Sequence record: MK250017.1
DNA length: 64,000 bases
Reading direction: 5' to 3' (one strand)
Shown here: positions 4,270 through 62,842 of the stretch, piece by piece
How positions within the stretch are numbered: the stretch's first letter is position 1
Layout of the letters: each line of letters opens with the position of its first letter
Notes under the pieces: model-generated
Databases searched by the model: none
What the model was told of the DNA's origin: nothing
What the model saw: the letters and a program-made list of their open reading frames with translations, nothing else
Position numbers and translations under genes: made by a program

Positions 4270-5003
4270 AGTCATATATAATTTATTTTAAACTTATCTA
4301 TTAAACTTTCAATTCTATACAAAATTTCAAAAGTACTTGAATAATACTCAGTCTAATAGAAATATCATTATCTAATTTTAATTATAATAGATATAAATTA
4401 AAAAATAATTTTTAATATCTATCTTTAACTTAATACTATATATTAATTATACTACAATATTTATAAAAAGTTTATATTTACTAATAAATTTTAAAAAATA
4501 ATTTAATAAATAAAAAATATTTACATTTCCGAAAGACTTACCTTACTAAATTCATTAAATTATTAAAAATTATAAATAAATTTTTTCATATATTTATATA
4601 TAGATCTATCACAANNNNNNNNNNNNNNNNNNNNNNNNNNNNTGAGTTCTGAGAAAAAGTCTACATTTTTTCTAAATATTTTTAATGAATTCTAAAAATA
4701 ATTCATAACTAATTAATATTCAATAAATTAAATAAAATATTTTTCATATAATTTTCATATAAATTAATATAAAATAAAAATTCAGATCTAAATTAATATA
4801 AATTTAAATCTGAATTAAAAATTAAATTTTTTATATACTATATATAATATCTATCTCAANNNNNNNNNNNNNNNNNNNNNNNNNNNNNNNNNNNNNNNNN
4901 NNNNNNNNNNNNNNNNNNNNTTATTTTTTAACTATTTTTAATGATATTTTTTTAAACTTTACAAATAATATCTAATATAACTATAGAAAATTAATTTAAT
5001 TTA
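4270..5003. other. very AT-rich non-coding divergence region with two N-gaps and a hairpin
   Basis: No credible ORF; lies between divergent genes; AATTCAGATCTAAATT / AATTTAAATCTGAATT near 4779-4816 pairs at 15 of 16 positions. Confidence 0.5.
4954..4981 (+). promoter_or_regulatory. putative middle-class promoter (AAAC-N18-TATAAC)
   Basis: AAACTTT 4954 and TATAAC 4976; same 22-nt offset as more than 10 other sites. Confidence 0.5.
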
Positions 5004-14477: not shown

Positions 14478-15443
14478 ATGAATAAAGATATACGTCCACC
14501 TCAGCATGTATTACATGTTTTCGATCCTAATAGAAAATGTAGACCACATGATGAAGTTGAGTTTATAGAAGGTCGTTATGTTGATATTGTAAATGCAAAG
14601 AATAAGGATCCACATACTTTGTATTTCGGTAAATCAAAGAATTCTGAACTCTTAACAGGTATTTTTTTAGGTGATCTTGAACTTACTTCAAAAGTAAAAG
14701 ATGTATCTCTTGTTTCTGTTGATGGTGTTGTAACATTATCTATTAAATATGTTAATTCTGCTGGTAAACTTGCAACAGTAAAAACAAATTTACCTTCATA
14801 GAAACTTGTTGAAGATATTAAAAAATTCTTAGAGGATTTTGATACAAGTATTCTTGATAAAATTAACACATCATTCAGTGATGTATATGATAGATTAAAT
14901 GTTATCGATTCATCAATAGTTGATATTAATAATCATCTTACAGTTATAGATACTTCTGTAGGTGAATTAACAACAAGAGTAGATACATTAGATACATCAT
15001 TATTAGGATTAATAGATGAACTTGATCATGGTAAGTATAATTATACAATACATGAAGATCCTGGAACATATGCAAACGGTTTCAAAAAAACATTTACTTT
15101 ATTTAAAGGTGAAGAAGAACAAAAAGATTCATCTAAGATTGAAGTAACTGATATGGTGTTGAAATAGTTAAATTATGTTAAAGATAATAATGTAATTGAA
15201 GCAAAAGTTTGGCCAGAACCTATTAAGTCAATCGATTTAATCGGTGATGTTCTTACATTAAAAGATGGTACAGTTATTAAAGATGTTATTTCATCTCTTG
15301 ATAAAGATTTAATTAAAACTGTATCATTAGACATGAAAGGTTATGACGAACATATTAATGACTTCATGAATACTGATTCATCTATTAATGACAGATTAAC
15401 TTTTGTAGAAAACCAATTGAAATGGGAAGAGTTAGATAAATAA
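14478..15443 (+). CDS. fibre-like structural protein, WEEL paralogue 1 (321 aa, 2 TAGs)
   Basis: Read-through of TAG 14799-14801; lD[TS]S[VIL] coiled-coil repeats; ends QLKWEELDK. Confidence 0.65.
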
Positions 15444-15487
15444 AAAAAGAGAAAATAAATAATAAAATTAAATCTATTAAATTTAAT

Positions 15488-17062
15488 ATGAATAAAAATA
15501 TGGTTTATGGTGCTAATGAAGCAACTTCTTTAACTGATAAAGTTGCAGATTTTACAAAGGGTAAAAACATTCACTTTGGTTCTGGTGCATTTGAAGAATA
15601 GAAAGTTGTTGCTATTGCAACAGCAGCTGAATCTGATGCAAAGGTTCGTTTCGTATATGATGCAATAGGTGATTCTGGTATGGTATTTGTTGGTAATCAA
15701 CTTGCATCTTCTAAGATTCTTGACATTACAACAAATAAAGTAGCAAAGAAACATTTTGATCCTGAAACTGGTAATTATGTAGAATCAACTACAGAAAAAG
15801 TTGCAACTAAGGTAACAGTTACATGGTTTGGTTCTCAGGAAGATCCAAAAGATAATGTTGTAAAGACACAGACATGGACTACTGTATTTGATGTTATTGA
15901 TACAGATACAGTAAAAGCAATGATTGATAAAGCTTCAGCAGATTTAAATAAATCAGTTGATGATTTAAAAACAAAGCATGAAGCAGACGTTTTACGTTTA
16001 GATACATCAGTTAACGGCATTGAGACACTTCTTAAGCGCGATGTAGTTTCAGCTGACACTGGTAGTGCACTTACAGTAACTCCTACTTCTGCTGATGCAA
16101 CAGGTTATAAGACTTATAAGGTTGCAGTTAACGTAGATGATGCAAAAGGTTCAACTATTAAGGTTGTAGATAATAAGATTAAGATTGCAAAGTATGCAAT
16201 TAAGCAGGTTGCTGCGGATTCTATGGAAAAAGATGCAGATACTAATGAAACAAAGTATGCATCTGAATATCAGTTAATGATGACTGATGCTGATGGTGTT
16301 ACAAAGGCAGTTGGTGATAAGATTAACATTGCAAAAGACTTCTTAGTAACTAAGGCACATGTATGTACATTTAAGTATGTTGCTGAAAATGGCGCAGAAA
16401 TTAAGTATGATGTACAACTTGAAGATCAATGGGGTAATTCTCCAGCAGTTAAATATGGAGATGAAGTAACATCAGAAAATCAGCTTCCATGGTCTAAGAA
16501 TCAGGATGGTACATGGGAACAAGCACGTCTTGGTTTCGGTATTAAGTATGGTCATTCATATTTACACTTAGTTATCAATACTAAGCCAACTAATACAAAA
16601 GCTGCTAGACTTGATGATGTTTATCTTGATTTTACAGAAATCTTTACAACATTCAAGGGTGATGATAAATTCATCAAGGTTGAGAATGGCGTTGTTTCTT
16701 TGGATATTGATGCTGTTTCATCTAAAGTTGATGAAAAACTTAAGGTTAATGATACATTCACAGAACTTAAGGCAAAAGATGAAGCAATTGAAGGTCGTCT
16801 TAATGGATTAGATACATCTGTAAGCAATATTGAGAAATCATATGTAACAGATGCATCTCTTGAAGCGCCAAAGGCAGATAATGCACAGTTCAATACTTTA
16901 AAGATTACAAATCATAAAGTTGTTGATGGTGTTGCAAAAGACACAGAGGTTACTGTAGATGTTGCAAATGAAAAATATTATGCAGGATTAAATACAGCAT
17001 TAAATACACTTACAGAAAATGATAAACATCTTTCTGCACTTCTTACATGGGAAGAACTCTAA
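15488..17062 (+). CDS. fibre-like structural protein, WEEL paralogue 2 (524 aa, TAG at codon 38)
   Basis: ATG 15488 joins track ORF 15680; module ASSKILDITT; ends LLTWEEL. Confidence 0.7.
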
Positions 17063-17089
17063 TTAATTTTTAATTAACTTTAATAATAT

Positions 17090-18982: not shown

Positions 18983-19633
18983 ATGGATCAAATTACAAAA
19001 GAAAGAAATAAACAAGAGTTTATAGAGTTATTGAGAAGTACAAAAAGAGAAGGTATTGAAGATTTAATTAACTGGTTATCAGAGAAGTCTGATTTCTTTG
19101 AAGCTCCATCATCTACAATTTACCATTGTAATTATCCTGGAGGTCTTTGCCAACATTCACTTAACGTTTATTATGCAGCACGAGACTTCTATGAGACTTA
19201 TAAGAAACTATCTCTGCCAGAGAAAAATGTAGAGTCTATCCCAATGGAATCTATTATCATAACTGCACTTCTTCATGATTTATGTAAAGCAAATAACTAT
19301 AAGATTGTTGAGAAGTTTAAGAAAGATGAATCAAACCAATGGTTCAAATACTATTCATATCAGATTGATGAAAAACTTCCACTCGGTCATGCTCCTAAAT
19401 CTATTTTTATTGCACAAACATTTATCAGACTTTCAGGTGAAGAATTATGCGCGATTATGTGGCATATGGGAATGTCAGATATTGGTGCATGGATGAGTAA
19501 TTACCAAAAACCTTCTATGCAAACATCATATACAAAAGTTCCACTTTCTGTATTAATTATGCAAGCAGACTTTTTCGCTTCATACTGTATGGAAAAAGAA
19601 GTAGATCAAACTGTTGAATGCAGAATTGGTTAA
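18983..19633 (+). CDS. HD-domain phosphohydrolase, YhaM-like (216 aa)
   Basis: EAPSS.IYH.NYPGGL.QHSLNV, LLHDLCK, GH, WHMG. Confidence 0.85.
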   Translation: MDQITKERNKQEFIELLRSTKREGIEDLINWLSEKSDFFEAPSSTIYHCNYPGGLCQHSLNVYYAARDFYETYKKLSLPEKNVESIPMESIIITALLHDLCKANNYKIVEKFKKDESNQWFKYYSYQIDEKLPLGHAPKSIFIAQTFIRLSGEELCAIMWHMGMSDIGAWMSNYQKPSMQTSYTKVPLSVLIMQADFFASYCMEKEVDQTVECRIG

Positions 19634-19637
19634 AAAT

Positions 19638-19676
19638 AAAAGAGAGATTAAATTGTTGATATTTAATCTCTCTTTT
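19638..19676. terminator. bidirectional terminator between convergent genes
   Basis: Perfect 16-bp inverted repeat AAAAGAGAGATTAAAT. Confidence 0.8.
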
Positions 19677-21318
19677 TATATATTAAATATGGTGAATAAC
19701 ATTTTAAATAATCTTCCCTAATATCATCTTTATTACAATTTAGAAATTCTTTTAACATACTTTTATTAAATCTAAATTCACTACGTTTATAATTATAATA
19801 ATTTAATGTAAATTTAATTTTATCTGATTCTAATTTAAAATTTAATGTTTCATATAATTTTATATTATCAGTTTCTAAATTACAATTAACAATAATAGAA
19901 TTATAAGTATAATTACATTTAAAATAATTTAATAATAGTTTTTCACAACCTATCACATATAAATTATTTTTATAACAAATTCTATTTAATATATAATTAT
20001 TATCTGATATATTACTAAATGTCATACAACATAATAATTCATTATTCTTAAATAATCCTAATTTTATATCAGACTCAATATAATTATCAATATGATAAGT
20101 ATTTATAAAATCTTTACATATATTTTCATCTAATTCTTTAATGATACAATTATCTGAAAATACTTTCTGCTCAAGATGACAACTTCTTAATATAATATTT
20201 TCTATTTTATCTATATTATAATGAATATCATCTTCCCTAAATGTCAACATCTATATATCAGTTTTAGATACTAAATCATATTTTACTTTAAATCTATTCT
20301 TACCATTAATTCCACAATGCCAATAAATTCCATTACATTCTATTGCAACTTTATAATCAGGTAAATAAAAATCAAATTCACGCGGTGATATTATATATCT
20401 AACATGTTGTTCAAACTTTATATTATGTTTCTCCAATAATAATCTTATTTTATATTCTATAGACGTCTCTAAATTTTTTTCTGGATTACATATAGGACAC
20501 ATAACAATATCTTTCTACTATCTATTAAAAAATGTATAATTCTTTATTGAAAATGGATTATGTATTTTACATTGATTATAAACTATAAATTCATTTTTAT
20601 TATCTGAATATTTAATTTCATAACCACGTTTTAACCATTTATTTTCTATTGTTTTATGTTTATTAACTAATTTCTATTTAACATTATTTTCATTCTTATT
20701 CGCACATTCATTAGAACAATAATGTCTAAACCCTTCACTGAATCTATAAAACTTAACATATTTTCCACATGTAGGACATACAGGACTTTTATTAATATGA
20801 TTCTTCATTCGATATAAAATCTCCTGTATAACTGATTTATTCCTCTATAAATCATCATACCTATTCATCATGTAATCATATATACCAAATTGCTTTAACT
20901 TTTTATTTTTACAATATTCAGATATTAATCTGTCATCTTTAATCATTAAATTCAATACATATTCATCATCAATATTTTCTTTCTACTTTACATCAGTTAA
21001 TTTATGTATTTTATTCGGATCATTTAATGAACATTTATATGAACAATATTGATTATAACCATATAAAAATCCTCTGAATAATAAAGGAATCTCTTTACCA
21101 CATGTTTTACAATATAAATGTAAATCATCTGGTAATTTATAATATATCCTATATATGATTTCCTGTATATTTTTTACAGATTTAAATCTATTCATTAAAT
21201 AATCATATAAACCATGATCTTTTAACCATGATTCTTTTATTCTACATGTATTTAATTGAATTTTATTGTTTCTAAATACTGTTAATTTATCTATTATAAT
21301 CTGATCTGCCACTTCCAT
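19663..21318 (-). CDS. free-standing Hef/Vsr-like homing endonuclease (about 551 aa, TAG-rich)
   Basis: Track ORFs 20983, 20251, 19663 share one frame via 6 TAGs (including TAG-TAG); two CxxCG...YCSxxC repeats, CPICN, catalytic EFDFYLPDYKVAIECNGIYWH; start 21318 or 21360. Confidence 0.72.
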
Positions 21319-21354
21319 ATTTTTTATATTAATAAATGTTAAAAATGTTTTAAT

Positions 21355-21382
21355 AAACAAATAACATATTTTACTATATAAT
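21355..21382 (+). promoter_or_regulatory. putative middle-class promoter for the polB-IntN gene
   Basis: AAACAAA 21355 and TATAAT 21377. Confidence 0.6.
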
Positions 21383-21414
21383 TTAAAATTTGAATTAGAA
21401 TTTAATTGAAAAAC

Positions 21415-22221
21415 ATGGAAGAAAAGAAATATAAATTTTGTCAGATAGATCCAAATAATTGTACTGTTGAAGAACTTGAAGAAGAAGTAGAAAGACTTAA
21501 AAACTTAGGTGATTTTTACGAGACTAAACAGTTGGCACTTAAGAAATTTATTAATAGTGTTTACGGAGCAACCGCGAGCAAGTATTTCATTGCACATAAC
21601 ACAGCTGTTGCGGAATCTATTACACTTCAGGGACAGGATTTGAATCATTATTCAGAGAATTCTGTTAATGCATATTTTAGTGGTATATTTCAGAATGATA
21701 CTGAATTGCATAAGAAATTGGGTATTGATTCGGAAAAAGCAAAAAAAGTAAGTATTGCCAAGGGTAAAACAACAGAAACAGGTACGTTAGATGGACCCGA
21801 GTTTTCATATCTTAATGGAAATCAGAGTCTTACTGTTGCTGGAGATACTGATAGCCAAATTGGCTCGACGCAATTCTATGTTGATAATAACATAACTACA
21901 ATGGAAGATTTCTTTACAAAAGCTAAATATGAAAATAATGATGTGGTTATAAAGTTACAAAATGGTTCTGAAGTTGTTCCTGTACATAATCACAATACAT
22001 TAACATATATAGATCATGATTTTAAAACGTCAGAACGCCCTATTAATTATATAATGAGACACAAAGTAACAAAGGATAAGTTCAGATTGAAGACTAAATC
22101 AGGTAAAGAACTTATAGTAACTGGAGATCATAGTATTATGGTTATAAGAAATAATGAATTGATTTCATTACCAGCAAGAGAAATAAAGAACACAGATAAA
22201 ATTATAACATTGGATAAGTAA
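21415..22221 (+). CDS. polB: family-B (T4 gp43-like) DNA polymerase fingers/palm fragment fused to split intein N-half (268 aa)
   Basis: Motif B KKFINSVYG; AESITLQGQ; first half of motif C AGDTD followed directly by the intein; ends at a true TAA 22219-22221; no exonuclease domain or motif A. Confidence 0.9.
   Translation: MEEKKYKFCQIDPNNCTVEELEEEVERLKNLGDFYETKQLALKKFINSVYGATASKYFIAHNTAVAESITLQGQDLNHYSENSVNAYFSGIFQNDTELHKKLGIDSEKAKKVSIAKGKTTETGTLDGPEFSYLNGNQSLTVAGDTDSQIGSTQFYVDNNITTMEDFFTKAKYENNDVVIKLQNGSEVVPVHNHNTLTYIDHDFKTSERPINYIMRHKVTKDKFRLKTKSGKELIVTGDHSIMVIRNNELISLPAREIKNTDKIITLDK
21853..22218 (+). mobile_element. split intein N-fragment (IntN, 122 aa, Ser1, no Cys)
   Basis: Block A SQIGSTQFYV; block B KELIVTGDHSIMV (TxxH); stop after EIKNTDKIITLDK. 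Confidence 0.9.
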
Positions 22222-23339
22222 TGAAATATTTAACAGAGGATGAGATAATTTAGTATTGTAAGAATCATAATATAGATTCGTCAATATGTTACTGTAAAGA
22301 ATGTGGTAAATTTCTTGCATATGATAATGCTGTATTTCATATAAATTCAGTTACGAAGAAATTAGTATGTGATGATAATAAGTTATCATTTTTAAGTACG
22401 AGAAATTATAATGGTAATGAATATCATTTATGTAGGTGTTATGATTGCGTATGTGAGAAATTTCCAAATTTTAAATATGTAAGATTTAAGTTTGCACATA
22501 AAGCTGCAAAATATACATAGTATGGATTTGGTGTTCCTGATGAAGATTTTAAACCTGTATCAAAAGCAAGACAATGTGTTACTAAAGAAAAAATGATTAA
22601 GAAATATGGTATTTCTGAAGGTACAGAAAGATGGAATTCATATTGTGAGAAACAATCTGTTACAAATACATATAAGTATAAGCATGAAAAATATGGGATG
22701 TCTTCAGATGAGTTTGATGAATATAATAAATCGCGAGCAGTAACAAAAGAAAATCTTATAAAAAGACATGGAAAAAAAGAAGGATTAAAAATCTGGAATG
22801 ACTATATTGAACGTCAGCGATATACATGTACATTAGATTATTTTATTGAAGAATATGGTAAAGAAGATGGAACACAAAAATATAATGAATTTGCAGAAAA
22901 ACGCTCAGATCAATATTATTTAATAGGTAATAAATCAAATATATCATTAGATTTATTTTCTAATTTAAAAGAATATTATAAAGATAATGATACTTATATA
23001 GAATATACAGTTAAATCATTAAATAATAATTTTTATCATGTAGATTATTATGATAAATCATTAAATATTGTTATCGAATTTTATGGAGATTTTTATCATT
23101 TTAATCCAAAGAAATATAATGGTAATGAAACAGATTATTTCATATTAGGGAAAGAACGAACGGTTAAAGATAAGTGGTAGCATGATAAAGAACGTATAGA
23201 TGATATTCAACAAACATTAAATTGTAAGGTAATAATTGTTTGGGAATCTACATATAAAAATGATAAAAAAGGAACTATTAATTCATTAATATAGATGATT
23301 AATAATAAAGAACAATTAAATGACATAACAGAAATATGA
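22221..23339 (+). CDS. free-standing Vsr/DUF559-like homing endonuclease (372 aa, 4 TAGs)
   Basis: ATG overlaps upstream TAA (TAATG); Cys-rich N-terminus; three KYG/RHG/EYG..EG...W/Y repeats; VDYYDKSLNIVIEFYGDFYH...W-TAG-HD..R...VIIVWE; TGA 23337. Confidence 0.8.
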
Positions 23340-23578
23340 TACCATATCAATCTAAAATAACTATTATAAGAAACAGTAATTTTAAAAAGCATAATACATT
23401 ATTAAATACTTTTTTGAAATTGATAGGAAGTAATTATCGTGATTTATATTATGCATTAAATCATGATTTGAATTGTATTACGATAAATGACAGATCAGAG
23501 ATAAATGATAATCAAATTATATATGCGAAATATTTAGGTATTGACATTATTGATGAATCACTTAAGAGAATTAGTTAA
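23336..23578 (+). CDS. small protein with BRCT-like C-terminus (80 aa)
   Basis: ATGA overlap with the upstream gene; YAKYLGIDIIDES resembles the BRCT KAxxLGIxIIxE helix. Confidence 0.45.
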   Translation: MIPYQSKITIIRNSNFKKHNTLLNTFLKLIGSNYRDLYYALNHDLNCITINDRSEINDNQIIYAKYLGIDIIDESLKRIS

Positions 23579-23618
23579 ATAGTATTATCGTGAAAAGTAT
23601 TTCAATGAAGAAAATAAT

Positions 23619-23646
23619 AAACTAATATTACAATATATTATATAAA
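23619..23646 (+). promoter_or_regulatory. putative middle-class promoter for the IntC-polB gene
   Basis: AAACTAA 23619 and TATAAA 23641, same 22-nt offset. Confidence 0.55.
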
Positions 23647-23669
23647 ATATATAATTAACAAAAGAAAAG

Positions 23670-23801
23670 ATGAATTACGATATACAAATAGAAGATATTG
23701 ATGTAATAGAGCAATTAGAAGATTTCAATGATGAGTATGTATATGATATTGAAGTAGATGATACTCATACATTCTTTGCAAATGATATTCTTGCTCACAA
23801 T
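23670..23801 (+). mobile_element. split intein C-fragment (IntC, 44 aa, no Cys)
   Basis: Block F EYVYDIEVDDTHTFFAN; block G DILAHN then Ser+1 (TCA 23802). Confidence 0.92.
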
Positions 23802-24644
23802 TCAATATACGTAGAGTTTGGAAGAATTTGCCAACAATTAGATATTCCGGAGTCTGAATGTGCACAGTTTGTTGTTGATCTTTGGAATTATGGTTGCGGA
23901 CCATATATGCAGCAGAAATATGAAGAGTATGCGAAGAAATATAATTGTGATGTAAATATTCAGAATTTGGAGTTAGAGAAAATTGCGGATACAACAATTT
24001 TAACATCAAAGAAGCATTATGCAATGGCAGAATGTTTTAAGGAACCTAATATTTTCTTGGAACCAATGGAGGAAGTAGTTTATAAGGGTTTGGAAATTGT
24101 TCAAGGATCTACACCACCATTTGCACGTGAATGTCAGAAAGATTTTACACGTTATATGTTGCAGTGGTATCAGACACATAAAGAACGTCCACCTTATGAA
24201 GAAATTATATCTCGTATTAAGGGTTATAAACAGCAATTTTTATTTAAAGATCCTGCCGATATTTCAAAGGGAAGCTCGATAGGAAATTATCAGAAATTTG
24301 TATTGGATGATAAGAATAAGTTAGTGTTTGGTGAACATTGTCCTATTCAGGTTAAAGCTTCAGGAATTGCTAATTTTATTTTAAATCAGCCAAAGAATAA
24401 GAAATATAAGGTTAAATATAATCCAATTAAAACAGCAGATAAAGTAAAGTGGTATTATGCAAAAGATAGAACATATGATTGTTTTGCATTTTTGCCAGGT
24501 GCTTATCCGATTGAGTATGCGCCGGAGATTGATTATGATAAGCAGTTTGAGAAAATGATTCTTGAACCTTGTAATCGTATTATTAAAATTATCGGTTATA
24601 CAACATTAACATCTAATTTATGTTATACTGCTGCACTTTGGTAA
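23670..24644 (+). CDS. polB: split intein C-half fused to DNA polymerase C-terminal palm/thumb (324 aa)
   Basis: After HN comes SIYVEFG, completing AGDTD|SIYV; LELEKI, KKHYA, YKGLEIVQGSTPPFAR, IDYDKQFEK match gp43-type C-terminal motifs. Confidence 0.9.
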   Translation: MNYDIQIEDIDVIEQLEDFNDEYVYDIEVDDTHTFFANDILAHNSIYVEFGRICQQLDIPESECAQFVVDLWNYGCGPYMQQKYEEYAKKYNCDVNIQNLELEKIADTTILTSKKHYAMAECFKEPNIFLEPMEEVVYKGLEIVQGSTPPFARECQKDFTRYMLQWYQTHKERPPYEEIISRIKGYKQQFLFKDPADISKGSSIGNYQKFVLDDKNKLVFGEHCPIQVKASGIANFILNQPKNKKYKVKYNPIKTADKVKWYYAKDRTYDCFAFLPGAYPIEYAPEIDYDKQFEKMILEPCNRIIKIIGYTTLTSNLCYTAALW

Positions 24645-24671
24645 TTTTTATAATTAAAATATTTTAATAAA

Positions 24672-25097
24672 ATGACGGAAAACGAAATAATAGATGCTAT
24701 ATCATTTATTAATGCACATAAAGATATAGTTGGATATAATATAGCAAGAAAAGCAACTGAGTTGATTTATAAATATGATGGTTATCCAGATTTGGATGAT
24801 ATTGAACATAAGAGATTATATGATTTTTATGAAAAACATAAAGAAGTATGTAAAGGTGGAGATTCATATAGATTAATTGAATTATATACATGTGGATTTA
24901 CTAATACTTATGTATGTAATGTATGTAATGAATCATATGATTATACTAATTATGATAAAGAATGTTGGTCAGATGGAAAGGGAGAGAAATTACCATTTTC
25001 GTTTATTGAAGTTGGTACAGGTATCGGACCATGTATAACTATAGTATGTACAGAAAATAATGATTCTAAAGATATTACAGATATTGATTCATGGTAA
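24672..25097 (+). CDS. hypothetical protein (141 aa)
   Basis: ATG-TAA ORF. Confidence 0.7.
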   Translation: MTENEIIDAISFINAHKDIVGYNIARKATELIYKYDGYPDLDDIEHKRLYDFYEKHKEVCKGGDSYRLIELYTCGFTNTYVCNVCNESYDYTNYDKECWSDGKGEKLPFSFIEVGTGIGPCITIVCTENNDSKDITDIDSW

Positions 25098-35306: not shown

Positions 35307-36803
35307 ATGAATAATACGTATCTTGAAAACGTTATATTCNNNNNNNNNNNNNNNNNNNNNNNNCTTGTTTAGTCATTTAAAGGAAGTTATTTTACTAATC
35401 CTTATTTAAAAACTTTATTTGATATTATTAAACCACATATATTGGAATATAGAGCTGAACCAACTGAACAGCAATCTATAGATTTAGTAAAACTTGCAAA
35501 TAAAGAAGATAAGGTAACAGAAGATCAAATACATGCTTTATGGCAAACAAGAGATATGGTTAGCCAATATACAGATGAATGGTTAAATCAGAATACATAG
35601 GCATTTGGTGAATGGCAAAACCTTATGAGTGGTCTTAGACGTGTTATTGAATATGTAAAAACTATTCAAGCTGATGTTACATTTGAAAATTGTGCAGAGA
35701 TTGTTCAGCATGCGAAATCAATGTTTCAATCAGATACTAATTTTACATTGAACAATTCAAAAGGGCATGATTTCTTTGATCCTGTTAATCATAAGCAAAC
35801 TGAACTTGAAACTAGAAAGACTGGTTATAATTTTGTTGATCAGTGTTTGAAAGGTGGTTGGGCGAATAAAACATTAAATGTATTTATGGGTTCACCAAAA
35901 GTAGGTAAGTCTATGTGGCTTTGTAATTTATGTGCTAATTCTGTAAGAAATGGAGAGAATTCTGCATATATTACATTGGAGATGGCGTATCAGCTTGTTG
36001 CACAACGTATCGGTTCAAATCTTTTTAATATTCCTATCGAAGAATATGAAAAAAGTGCTGCAGATGCAAATTTTATGCAACAGAAGATGAAAGAATTTTA
36101 TATGAATTCACTTATCACGCCAGGTAAGTTTATCATAGAAGAATTCCCAACATCATCTGCAACTGTATATGATATAGAATCTTTCTTACTTAAATTAGAG
36201 GAAGAACTTTCTACTGAAGCAAAACCTTTTAAATTTAAGAACATTTTCATTGATTATGTTAATATCATGAAAGATGCGAAGAATCCTAATTCAGAAAGTA
36301 CATATTTAAAAATTAAATCTATTTGTGAAGATGTTCGTGCGATGGCACAAAGAAATAACTGGTGTGTTATTTCTTTAACTCAGACAAATAGAACTGCATA
36401 TGATTCAACTGATATTGGTATGAGTAATGTTTCTGAATCTGGTGGTTTGATTGCAACAGTTGATAGTTTATTCGGTATTATTCAATCTTCAATGATGCGT
36501 GTTGATAATACATATTATTTAAAAGCTGTTGCTATTCGAAATTCTGGACATATGGGAGATAAAAAGAAATTTGATTTTAATCCAACATATTTAAGAATTG
36601 AAGAAAATCTTGATGAAAATATTATTCCTGAAAATGTATCACTTGATGGTTTAGTAAAAGATAAACATAAGAATGATAATACAGGAAATAATAATTATCA
36701 GCAATATCCTATAAATGTTGGAGTTCGTCCAAATGTAATAGAATCACCTCAATTAGGATTAACAGAAACACAAATACAGGCACAAGATTTATTTAGCATG
36801 TAA
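35307..36803 (+). CDS. DnaB-family replicative helicase, T4 gp41-like (about 498 aa; spans N-gap; TAG at codons 22 and 98)
   Basis: Walker A GSPKVGKS, YITLEM, IFIDYVN, LTQTNR, VSESGGL; frame continuous from ATG 35307 across the 24 N. Confidence 0.88.
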
Positions 36804-59800: not shown

Positions 59801-62800
59801 TTATTTGTCATTATTACTATTTGTATCTAATGTATTTTCATCTATATCATTATTATTCGAAAATTCTACTTGCTAATTTGTATTTTTAGTCATGTAATTT
59901 GTAAATGTTATTAATGTGCCTGGTATTCTATCTGAACCTAATATCGCTTTTACAGATTCCCAGAATTCTCTTTGTTTTATTGTATCTGTTCCTATATGAT
60001 AATGTTTTGTTGTTGCACCTGTATCATCTCGTGCCTATTCTATATAAGCAGATACACCATAATCATAGAATAATTTTAATATAGTAGGACTTTTCATTAT
60101 AATATTTGTCATAAGTTCAGTAAAATCCATACCGTTATTAATAATATCTATAGCTTCGCCATATAAATGTCGTGAATTATTCTTTTTAAAATACATTACT
60201 TCACCAATAGCATTCATACATTTATAATAATCATATTTTTTTATAAATGCATTACCATCAACTTTATTACCATATTCATCTACTGCCCATCTTCTTCCAG
60301 ATACTAATTTACATTTATTATCAGATTCAGATAAAATAGTTTTATAAATATCCTTCATAAAAGATTTTAAACCAGTTAATGGTATAGTAGAACCAGCTAC
60401 ATAATCAGATTTCTTTACATATTGATCTATCATATCCATATTAAAATTAACTGCCTCTACTGTTTCTTTTCCGTGTGCATTATATATAGTACCGGCTTCT
60501 TCTTGTTCTTGCTATTGTTCATCAGTTGTAGAACTTATATTCTATTTTCTCTATGCAGTCACGACTGCATCTTCAGATGTTTTTGCACCTTTAATATGTT
60601 CTGCTCCATATCGTTTTAATGCATCATAATATGCCATTCTAGCAAGTTTACCATTTCCAATATCTACTAATACAATAGTATTTGCTGTTTTTTTATCTAT
60701 TGTTTTACCTGATTTATCTTTAATTTTAGATGGTACTGGCCATTCTCTTCTAACTAATTTAACATTTGTTCTCCAATTTGTACCCTAACCCTAATCATTA
60801 TCAGTATCGAATACCCATTCAATACCATCTATAATATACCAACCAGATTCTGCTTCATACATGCATTCTTCTATTTTTGTACGTGCTTGACCAGTTCTAA
60901 TAGCTTGTTCTGCTCTATTTAAATCCATTAAAACAATAGGCATTTTTTCACCACGAACAATACTTAAGTTTGCACCATTTAATTCAACAAGTAAATACTG
61001 TTTTTGTAACTATAATAAATTTCTCATATTATGTTCATATGCAACTTCATAAAATCTATGAGTATTTCCAGATGACATCATATTATTTCCGGTTCCTTCA
61101 AGATTTGCTGCATCTCCATCAGATTGTTGATTTGTAATTTTCTCTGGTTCATTTTTATTTGATGATTGAGTTTCTGAAGTAGCCATTGCAGAATCACCAC
61201 TTGCATATGTCATATTTCTTCCAGGTCCTAATAATACGAAGAAATCATTATCTGCTCGTGTTGGATCAAATTTTGTTCTATTTAAACATAATGAAAATTC
61301 AACACTATAATTAGGATTATTTGGATCTATTAAACCTGTGTTAACTGATGAATATTGCATTTTACAATTTAATCCCACAAAATCCTATATTTCCTATGCA
61401 TTATTAAGTAATCTCCAATTATTAACATGATATACTGTTGCTGCTTCATTATCATCTGTAATATTAGTAAATATCTTTGTCTATATATGCGGTTTTACTT
61501 TCTATTCTTCATCTGTTTTAGTTGCTGCTTTACCATCAATAGCTCTATTATTAATAAATGTATTTGTCCAGAATGTCATATCTATTGATTCATCATAACC
61601 ACTTTCACCTAATAATCTATTAATATTCATGAAAGATAATCCATATCTCGGATCTATCCATGATTCAAAAAATGAATTAGAATCTTTCCATGCATGTGTT
61701 GTCAAATCATGTAAAAACATTTCTGGTGATTTACAATTACACCAAACCATTACATCGTTTGTATCATCTGGATCACAAAAGAAGAAACTTAATCTTAAAC
61801 GTTTTGCAAGATCCATCATAGCATCTCGTGATGAACCATTAAAATTATATCTAGATTCTTCATTTCTTAAATCTGGTACATATAATTCTCCGGTTATAAT
61901 CTATGTCTAATATTTCTGATATTGCGTCTAATCCATCTAATCAGAAACAACATTTGTAATTCTGAAATCACATCTCATAGACTTAATCATTGCATGTCCA
62001 CTCTGAAAAAATACACTGCATCTATCACCTTGCTTTACAAAATCCTTTTTTAATAAACCAGGGTCTGATGTAGTTACTATAAGTCTCATCGTAGGTAAAA
62101 CACCTGTTAATGGCATTTGATAAATTTCATACTCATTATAATTCTTATAATAACCGGTTTCCATAGAAAAATGCTATATTTCTGTAGATTCAAAATAATG
62201 ATCATTTATACGAATTATAGGATATACGGCACCTTTATTATACCATTGATTCTCTTTAATATTAGGACTTGTTACATCTGGTACTGAAATACCAATTACA
62301 TCAGGATTATTAATATCAGCGCCTAATGGTAATGAACTACGAGGATTATCTTTATCTTTATTTCCCATTGAATCCTCAAATATACCTTTATTTGAAGAAT
62401 CTTTAGAACCTTTACCATTGTCATCAGAATCATTTGCATTATCTCCAGTATTTGATGTATTCTTATTTGTTCCTGAAGAATCATTCTCTGACTCATCATT
62501 TGTATTAGAATTATCATCATTACTTCCATCAGAATTAGATGTATCTTTATTAGATGTATCAACCATATCTAATATTTTATCTTCATCTGATTTTGAATAA
62601 CAAACACCACCATATTTTCCTGAACCATAATCAATAGTATAATTAAAAAAATCTTTCTTTATTATCTAATTTGTTGTTACATCTTTATATACTTTTGTTT
62701 CTGTATATAATTTTGCATTCTTACCTTTAAATATGATATTATAAGTATTATTTATTGTGTCAGTATAATAATAATGTGTTATAGTTTTATCTGATGATAC

Positions 62801-62842
62801 TTCTCCTTTTTTTAAATATTTAATACCATTTATCGTTAACAT
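59801..62842 (-). CDS. baseplate hub-like protein with C-terminal M15-type zinc peptidase (1013 aa, 18 TAGs)
   Basis: Five track ORFs (62174, 61937, 61502, 61010, 60035) share one frame from ATG 62842 to TAA 59801; GWYIIDGIEWVF...WRTNVKLVRR; SRHLYGEAID (H-x6-D) and HYH. Confidence 0.7.

Follow-up and report, generated by a model that had tools for sequence, protein, structure and literature searches.

The DNA considered here is a stretch of 64,000 nucleotides from sequence record MK250017.1 (the window), which carries between positions 21415 and 24644 two genes for consecutive parts of a family-B DNA polymerase (PolB), each fused to one half of a split intein and separated from one another by the gene of a free-standing endonuclease (Table 1). 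Positions 19000-25000 are 100 % identical (megablast) to the public record of Prevotella phage Lak-A1, MK250015.1, a circular, unannotated sequence of 541,664 bp in which base 423,663 corresponds to window base 19000; the Lak phages are deposited in GenBank as records without annotation. The two genes in the window, here called C1 and C2, encode the second and third pieces of what is very probably a single replicative enzyme, the first piece of which is the product of a third gene, N, located in a distant part of the same genome.

Table 1. Polymerase pieces, intein halves and neighbouring features (window positions, except where a record is named)
Feature	Position	Strand	Description
Polymerase N gene, 515 amino acids	MK250015.1 complement(202064..203611)	-	Exo I-III, motif A, first long fingers helix; outside window
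C1 (piece 2) extein, 146 amino acids	21415..21852	+	End of fingers-tip loop, second fingers helix with motif B (KKFINSVYG), palm insertion, motif C up to GDTD
Split-intein N-half	21853..22221	+	122 amino acids and stop; Ser1 (SQIGST), RH 'NX' motif (MRHKV), block B TGDHS, no Cys
Vsr-type free-standing homing endonuclease gene	22221..23339	+	372 amino acids, four TAG=Gln; phrog_22677, E=3.7e-48
Small open reading frame, 80 amino acids	23336..23578	+	Start overlaps endonuclease stop; ends before C2; Lak-B1 counterpart 101 amino acids
Split-intein C-half	23670..23801	+	44 amino acids, ends ...DILAHN; no Cys
C2 (piece 3) extein, 280 amino acids and stop	23802..24644	+	Ser+1 (SIYVEF) completing motif C, remaining palm (KKHY), thumb, C-terminal tail
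Sigma-70-like hexamer pair TAAACA-17-TATAAT	21354..21382	+	10/12 consensus matches; putative promoter
Free-standing homing endonuclease gene	19663..21360	-	565 amino acids from TTG 21360; directly 5' of C1, antisense; phrog_559, E=1.1e-41; phrog_3339, E=6e-41

A preliminary description of this locus, made from its sequence, had the first polymerase gene begin shortly before motif B, lack both the exonuclease motifs and motif A, and lie next to an antisense endonuclease gene, and all of this is borne out. From ATG 21415, the conserved start at which all homologues begin (ME..), 42 residues precede KKFINSVYG (residue 43 onward), and from TTG 21406, the mechanical start of the open reading frame (ORF), 45 do so, the motif then starting at residue 46. 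Of the 856 positions in the full-length PolB profile phrog_262, the C1 ORF (21415-22221 overall) matches only 497-569 (E=2.5e-13), and the product therefore has neither the exonuclease domain nor motif A; tblastn revealed no N-terminal polymerase part within the 64-kb window. On its 5' side the frame is shut by an in-frame TAA at 21403 and is filled with stops over 600 nt under both genetic codes, whether TAG is read as a stop or as Gln. Over 400 metagenomic proteins, 262-348 amino acids in length, share this N-terminus, and together with the antisense endonuclease gene 5' of it (an assignment with E-values near 1e-41) it is also present in phage Lak-B1 and in an independent IMG/VR record.

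Searched in six frames with phrog_262, the complete Lak-A1 record yielded the exonuclease and motif A subunit that had been supposed to be encoded elsewhere. There are exactly three matches, in agreement with the claim that the polymerase is in at least three pieces, and they jointly cover profile positions 113-840: positions 113-503 at 202070-203254(-), 497-569 at 426120-426362(+) and 581-840 at 428465-429265(+). The first of these is the N gene, which lies 222.5 kb from C1 on the opposite strand, or about 317 kb away the other way round the circle. Aligned with T4 gp43 and its Aes012 counterpart, the N protein contains Exo I (DIE), Exo II (FD), Exo III (YxxxD) and motif A (DFASLYPS), and it stops in the fingers, six residues past ...ELKHILEH; both this stop and the start methionine of C1 are kept across homologues. 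A separate N gene is present in each of the 15 GenBank Lak genomes (15/15). The IMG/VR relative G001 likewise has three PolB pieces, with N about 225 kb off and on the opposite strand, and in Lak-B1 the gene order is permuted, such that N is found about 6 kb 3' of C2 and on the same strand as C1 and C2.

Laid end to end, the three ORFs tile the unbroken, intein-free polymerase of a close relative (P0122, 942 residues, about 54 % identical), with N corresponding to residues 1-508, the C1 extein to 517-666 (53 % identity) and the C2 extein to 667-942 (47.5 % identity). All of the catalytic motifs, namely Exo I-III, A, B, C and the KKRY motif (KKHY here), are intact over the three pieces and can be aligned with T4 gp43. 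An AlphaFold2 model of P0122, computed from a 19-sequence alignment (predicted local distance difference test 86, predicted template modelling score 0.82), has two fingers helices at residues 470-507 and 531-566 with a loop of 23 residues (508-530) between them, and because the first break maps to this loop it is placed at the tip of the fingers. When the Lak pieces are aligned by MAFFT with T4 gp43 and with Aes012 gp43A plus gp43B, the Lak and Aeromonas breaks coincide in one column, near T4 residue 510; the division of gp43 in the fingers of Aeromonas T4-like phages, to which the preliminary description had appealed, is borne out as a precedent. Between Lak-A1 and Lak-B1 the ratio of non-synonymous to synonymous substitution rates (dN/dS, by the Nei-Gojobori method, with dS of 0.4-0.95) is 0.085 for N, 0.052 for the C1 extein and 0.040 for the C2 extein, compared with 0.12 and 0.08 for the N- and C-halves of the intein and 0.18-0.20 for the two endonucleases; the low ratios imply that the pieces are working genes and not remnants.

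The second break is occupied by the split intein. PF14890 (Pfam) covers the intein N-half in all of the C1 homologues; the best match of this half to a solved structure is 9hth (E=2.7e-12), the sequence of which matches the intein region of phage Aes123, and the C-half matches both 9hth and the PolB16 intein structure 8cpn. The motif definitions of PMC10189870 (Ser1, Ser+1, terminal His-Asn, TxxH and a NX-motif His after Arg or Lys) were used to inspect the two halves, and the residues for class-1 oxyester splicing are all present: Ser1, the RH of the NX motif, TGDHS, the terminal HN and Ser+1. The C2 ORF (23670-24644) matches phrog_262 positions 581-840 (E=8e-31). The intein is inserted between the D and the S of motif C (GDTD|S), after T4 D620, and joining of the flanks restores DTDS, at a point where residues 666 and 667 of P0122 are contiguous; C1 and C2 would thus be joined by protein trans-splicing. 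The intein halves enclose the Vsr-type endonuclease gene, which has their orientation and a start that overlaps the stop of C1 (TAATG). The 80-residue ORF that follows it (23336-23578) has no match among the PHROG families.

These observations lead us to propose, with considerable confidence, that Lak-A1 makes one family-B replicative polymerase of T4 gp43 type from three separately translated genes, with the C1 and C2 products trans-spliced and the N product held non-covalently. The N gene would supply the N-terminal domain, the 3'-5' exonuclease, motif A and the first fingers helix, its stop lying in the fingers-tip loop. C1 would start in that same loop and contribute the second fingers helix, motif B and the palm as far as DTD, fused to the intein N-half of 122 residues, and C2 would consist of the intein C-half of 44 residues and, joined to it, Ser+1, the remainder of the palm and the thumb. 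Association of the two halves, which are cysteine-free, have Ser1 and Ser+1 and are of the Aes123 PolB1 type, would ligate C1 to C2 and give a C subunit of 426 residues that could assemble with the N subunit without a covalent link. The interface between the two subunits is expected to be formed by the antiparallel fingers helices and by a shared palm sheet, with motif A from N and motif C from C, as in gp43A/gp43B and in a fingertip-split Pfu polymerase. Both breaks would be scars of mobile elements, with the Vsr-type endonuclease gene between the intein halves making this a 'fractured gene' and phrog_3339 endonuclease genes standing at the fingers break, and a later rearrangement of the genome would have parted N from C1 and C2.

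The closest known parallel is Aeromonas phage Aes123 (JN377899.1), annotated with gp43A (the N-terminal half), gp43B1 with an N-intein, a putative VSR endonuclease and gp43B2 with a C-intein. The pieces are the same three, with both breaks at the same places (the fingers tip and DTD|S of motif C), and the sizes are similar, at 498/292/353/320 residues in Aes123 and 515/268/372/324 in Lak. C1 and C2 are homologous to their Aes123 counterparts (E=1e-21 and 1e-18), the two endonucleases are 33 % identical (E=6e-32) and both belong to phrog_22677, and identities are 57 % for the intein C-half, 32.5 % for the N-half and 25-27 % for the exteins; in both phages the inteins are cysteine-free, with Ser1 and Ser+1. 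The systems differ in arrangement, in that the four Aes123 genes are contiguous and overlapping whereas in Lak-A1 222 kb and a change of strand separate N from the other pieces and in Lak-B1 N lies about 6 kb 3' of C2, and a recoded TAG within the N gene is a Lak feature not shared with Aes123. [quoted passage not shown]

Other systems share one or other of these features. In the T4-like phages 44RR, 25, 31, 65 and 133, according to Petrov and Karam (summarized in PMC3061061) and to the Aes012 annotation, gp43A and gp43B are translated separately from cistrons broken, as in Lak, in the fingers-tip loop; PMC3061061 also places the natural gp43 splits in the fingertip and the two cistrons from 2 bp to 3 kb apart. 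Lak adds a split intein and dispersal, and its spacing lies outside this range (222 kb in Lak-A1, about 225 kb in G001 and about 6 kb in Lak-B1, where the order is permuted); cistron spacing is, however, a feature of gene organization and not of the enzyme. Pfu polymerase cut at the fingertip reassembles from its separate fragments and is fully active with wild-type kinetics (PMC3061061), although that construct is artificial and bicistronic with coupled translation, unlike Lak. C1 and C2 match exactly the 'fractured genes' of Dassa et al. (2009; PMC2677866), in which a split intein accompanies a free-standing Vsr-like or GIY-YIG endonuclease, a mainly phage arrangement, whereas a further break of the same enzyme and a dispersed third gene, both present in Lak, do not feature in that survey. 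Among jumbo phages, the PhiKZ PolB has separately encoded subunits, DNAP-N (gp82) and DNAP-C (gp50), that form a stable 1:1 complex by cryo-EM (bioRxiv 10.64898/2026.09.30.755723), but it is split in a palm insertion and has no intein, while Lak is split at the fingers tip and has one. The polymerase genes of the unrelated Jug phages are often split by endonuclease genes, as described in a 2026 paper. The split PolBs of archaea come from another domain of life and, unlike that of Lak, have other break sites and a single break each. Nanoarchaeum equitans, in which PolB is joined by the Neq Pol split intein, offers a precedent for a PolB healed by trans-splicing. That intein is cited in PMC10189870. 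Methanothermobacter, whose PolB is split in the palm and encoded by genes 85 kb apart (PMC3061061), provides a precedent for dispersed PolB subunit genes. The Lak phage papers that we covered make no mention of a split polymerase or an intein.

The genetic code bears directly on the N gene. Code 15 has been reported for Lak in the Lak genome paper (PMC6784885), and many long frames in the window open only when TAG is read as Gln, for example 59801-62842(-) with 18 TAGs. Codon 7 of the N gene is an in-frame TAG (MIINKE-TAG-), the only one in the gene, and is kept in Lak-A1, in Lak-B1 (L011) and in the Lak-C1-like record (L001, IMG/VR G001). Because it stands where two relatives with genes translatable by table 11 have CAA (Gln), the reading of TAG as Gln is directly supported, and the N subunit therefore could not be made under the standard code, its expression depending on recoding by the phage. 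C1 and C2 are free of TAG and read alike under either code. No tRNA, and hence no local suppressor tRNA, was detected by ARAGORN in the 64-kb window. Dispersal together with the codon 7 TAG could tie assembly of the polymerase to a separate transcriptional programme and to TAG-to-Gln recoding, such that the code switch gates replication, and fingertip-split polymerases may, further, differ in nucleotide selectivity in a manner suited to a modified-base or low-GC lifestyle; we offer this as speculation and think it rather unlikely. Three runs of N interrupt the window, at 4615-4642 (28 bases), 4860-4920 (61) and 35340-35363 (24).

Several points weigh against assembly of the enzyme in this manner. 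The N gene lies outside the window and was taken from the public Lak-A1 record, and its expression requires that TAG be read as Gln at codon 7. A prediction of the three-chain complex (an N relative, P0271, with the two window exteins) scored 0.80, barely separated from the 0.78 of a control in which the third chain was replaced, and gives no verdict on whether the chains would associate. RNA-library contigs of relatives from four metatranscriptomes, surveyed over 19600-24700, cover C1 and C2, but because they are assembled contigs that may include DNA and are without starts, ends or splice joints they do not count as evidence of expression and cannot prove transcription. The promoter-like element that the preliminary description assigned to C1 is present as a hexamer pair and is kept in Lak-B1 and G001, albeit at about the background level of identity; its role as a promoter is not supported, since such sites are at the level expected by chance (55 sigma-70-type sites found against 60 ± 9.5 expected in shuffled sequence), and the pair is therefore not evidence of a promoter. 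The host is a member of the Bacteroidota, whose promoter consensus differs from the sigma-70 type, and inspection by eye revealed no exact TAnnTTTG 5' of C1. Independent translation, trans-splicing, subunit assembly and activity are inferences, for splicing and assembly from homology and conserved catalytic residues, whereas gene content, tiling, motifs, position of the breaks, selection, conservation and the homologies of intein and endonuclease have been established by computation.

It is also conceivable, though improbable, that the intein halves merely hold C1 and C2 together without splicing, giving a non-covalent enzyme of three subunits. Splicing by purified split-intein precursors is in many cases partial or absent (PMC11923092), and the N-half in Lak is only 32.5 % identical to the characterized Aes123 intein; this view does not, however, account readily for the complete set of class-1 oxyester residues, for purifying selection on both halves or for a junction that restores the invariant DTDS exactly. 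A second and still less probable suggestion is that the first break is likewise healed covalently, by an unrecognized intein or at the RNA level by trans-spliced intron halves. A group I intron is present at motif A of the same gene in related phages and mobile elements cluster at the polymerase gene, both of which speak in its favour, but N ends a few residues past the first helix and C1 starts about 13 residues before the conserved part of the second helix, which leaves no room for intein halves, and there are no intein motifs; no Rfam match lies beside either edge of the break, N and C1 are 222 kb apart on opposite strands, and the N stop and the C1 ATG are both conserved.

We consider it very unlikely that the pieces are the decaying remnants of a polymerase wrecked by mobile elements and that Lak replicates with another enzyme. 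The gene has been heavily invaded by endonuclease genes, and the Lak-C1-like record shows endonuclease decay beside it, but all three pieces have dN/dS of 0.04-0.09 with dS near 0.9, the catalytic motifs are all intact, the pieces are kept in 15/15 Lak genomes and recur among hundreds of relatives from metagenomes, and there is no other PolB match in the Lak-A1 genome. That an artefact of assembly or gene calling hides an in-frame N-terminus 5' of 21415 has nothing in its favour and is scarcely credible, given the TAA at 21403 and the stop-filled upstream frame, an upstream space wholly occupied by the antisense gene, and the recurrence of the same architecture in Lak-B1, the Lak-C1-like G001 and independent metagenome assemblies; the preliminary description had itself raised such an error as a concern, and the C1 N-terminus common to Lak-B1, the IMG/VR record and the metagenomic proteins answers it. 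Assembly of one enzyme from N, C1 and C2, with a single spliced junction, thus remains much the best account.

How the breaks arose can be approached through the relatives. In two of these (P0375 and P0121) N and C1 are fused, yet the split intein and the endonuclease gene are present at motif C and the locus is otherwise syntenic. In another relative the N gene is interrupted inside motif A (DFA|LYPS) by a group I intron (RF00028, 89.7 bits, E=1.8e-23), on an ENA metagenome contig (L026:5270-5519), and this gene still ends at the fingertip; exonuclease-only proteins of 426-440 amino acids (P0282, P0285, P0290 and others) end at the point of the motif A intron, from which it follows that the polymerase of some relatives is in four DNA segments. 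Rfam scans found no family, group I introns included, near either break in Lak. At the Lak fingers break, each edge is bordered by an endonuclease gene that matches phrog_3339, and a history of homing endonuclease invasion followed by rearrangement would fit the sequence data. The endonuclease beside the N gene is, though, weakly similar to the two in the window (E of about 0.002-0.003), and we therefore cannot claim that one element split the gene.

The fingers break is common. A search of 1.84 billion cluster representatives (50 % identity) with the N protein gave, among the best 150 clusters, 98 N-only proteins of 452-554 amino acids ending right after the first fingers helix and 23 of full length. 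In a FastTree tree of 123 N regions (a quick, unrooted tree with split and unsplit states taken from gene calls) the two states are interspersed and at least 16 changes are needed; the fingertip is thus a recurrent site of breakage. The Lak clade of six rows is well supported and holds both states, and the Aeromonas proteins group with the unsplit T4 gp43, far from it, for which reason the Lak and Aeromonas fingers breaks are probably independent. No C-subunit gene was found beside N within the contigs of four sampled N-only relatives, three of these contigs being short. A Lak-like N gene (P0318, 57 % identical) with no C-subunit gene within 8 kb is carried by a 743,268 bp contig (L024, ENA ERZ27256812 k141_24465); if this is one phage genome, it is larger than the 735 kb that PMC7162821 gives for the largest phage genome. 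A contig of about 344 kb from another phage (L013), with a C1 homologue 62 % identical to that of Lak, has no N gene within 10 kb 5' of its polymerase pieces, and a resolvase gene and an IS605 OrfB/TnpB-like gene (15275-17076) about 4.4 kb 3' of them. In a distant phage (L021:6428-10674), an N-only polymerase gene precedes a ribonucleotide reductase gene with an intein domain, a 408-residue ORF and the C-terminal part of the reductase, the reductase apparently being fractured in the manner of the polymerase.

The neighbours of the polymerase genes are themselves variable. The antisense endonuclease gene 5' of C1 has six TAG=Gln codons and encodes repeated Cys-rich modules and a Vsr-like nuclease core; its true start is likely to be the ATG near 21318 that gives MEVADQ. 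It is of full length in Lak-A1 (565 residues) and Lak-B1 (552 residues), whereas the Lak-C1-like record has lost about 1 kb (window 19688-20668) that includes the nuclease core, leaving a 255-residue ORF, and in a metatranscriptome contig of a relative position 19737 is joined to 21013 within the gene. This polymorphism looks like endonuclease decay after fixation. A hairpin with a 16-bp stem and T tracts on either side (19638-19676) lies between this gene and the convergent gene of a HD-domain phosphohydrolase (18983-19633), and looks like a bidirectional terminator. The HD-domain gene is directly 5' of the C1 block in Lak-A1 and 3' of C2 in Lak-B1, where (505000-518200, L015) it is followed by four genes, the last of which (202 residues) stands before N in Lak-A1 as well, and then by N itself; the Lak-B1 region also holds an extra antisense ORF of 501 residues.

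The three-piece design is already known from Aes123, and Lak is a scattered further example of it that introduces no new principle; what is new is its occurrence in Lak megaphages, the lineage-dependent dispersal of the N gene to a distance of 222 kb on the opposite strand, and the recoded TAG at codon 7. The commonness of N-only clusters and the repeated changes between split and unsplit states merit dedicated study, and a natural cysteine-free split intein is added to a family sought for protein engineering. The complete replicative polymerase of the Lak megaphages is now identified, of which annotation with code 11, or as a single gene, would see only fragments. The known distance between the genes of split PolB subunits is extended from 85 kb (as quoted in PMC3061061) to about 222 kb, and since two Lak lineages place the genes differently, their linkage is dispensable. 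A homologous split intein and Vsr-type endonuclease occupy the same polymerase site in T4-like Aeromonas phages and in megaphages of the Bacteroidota.

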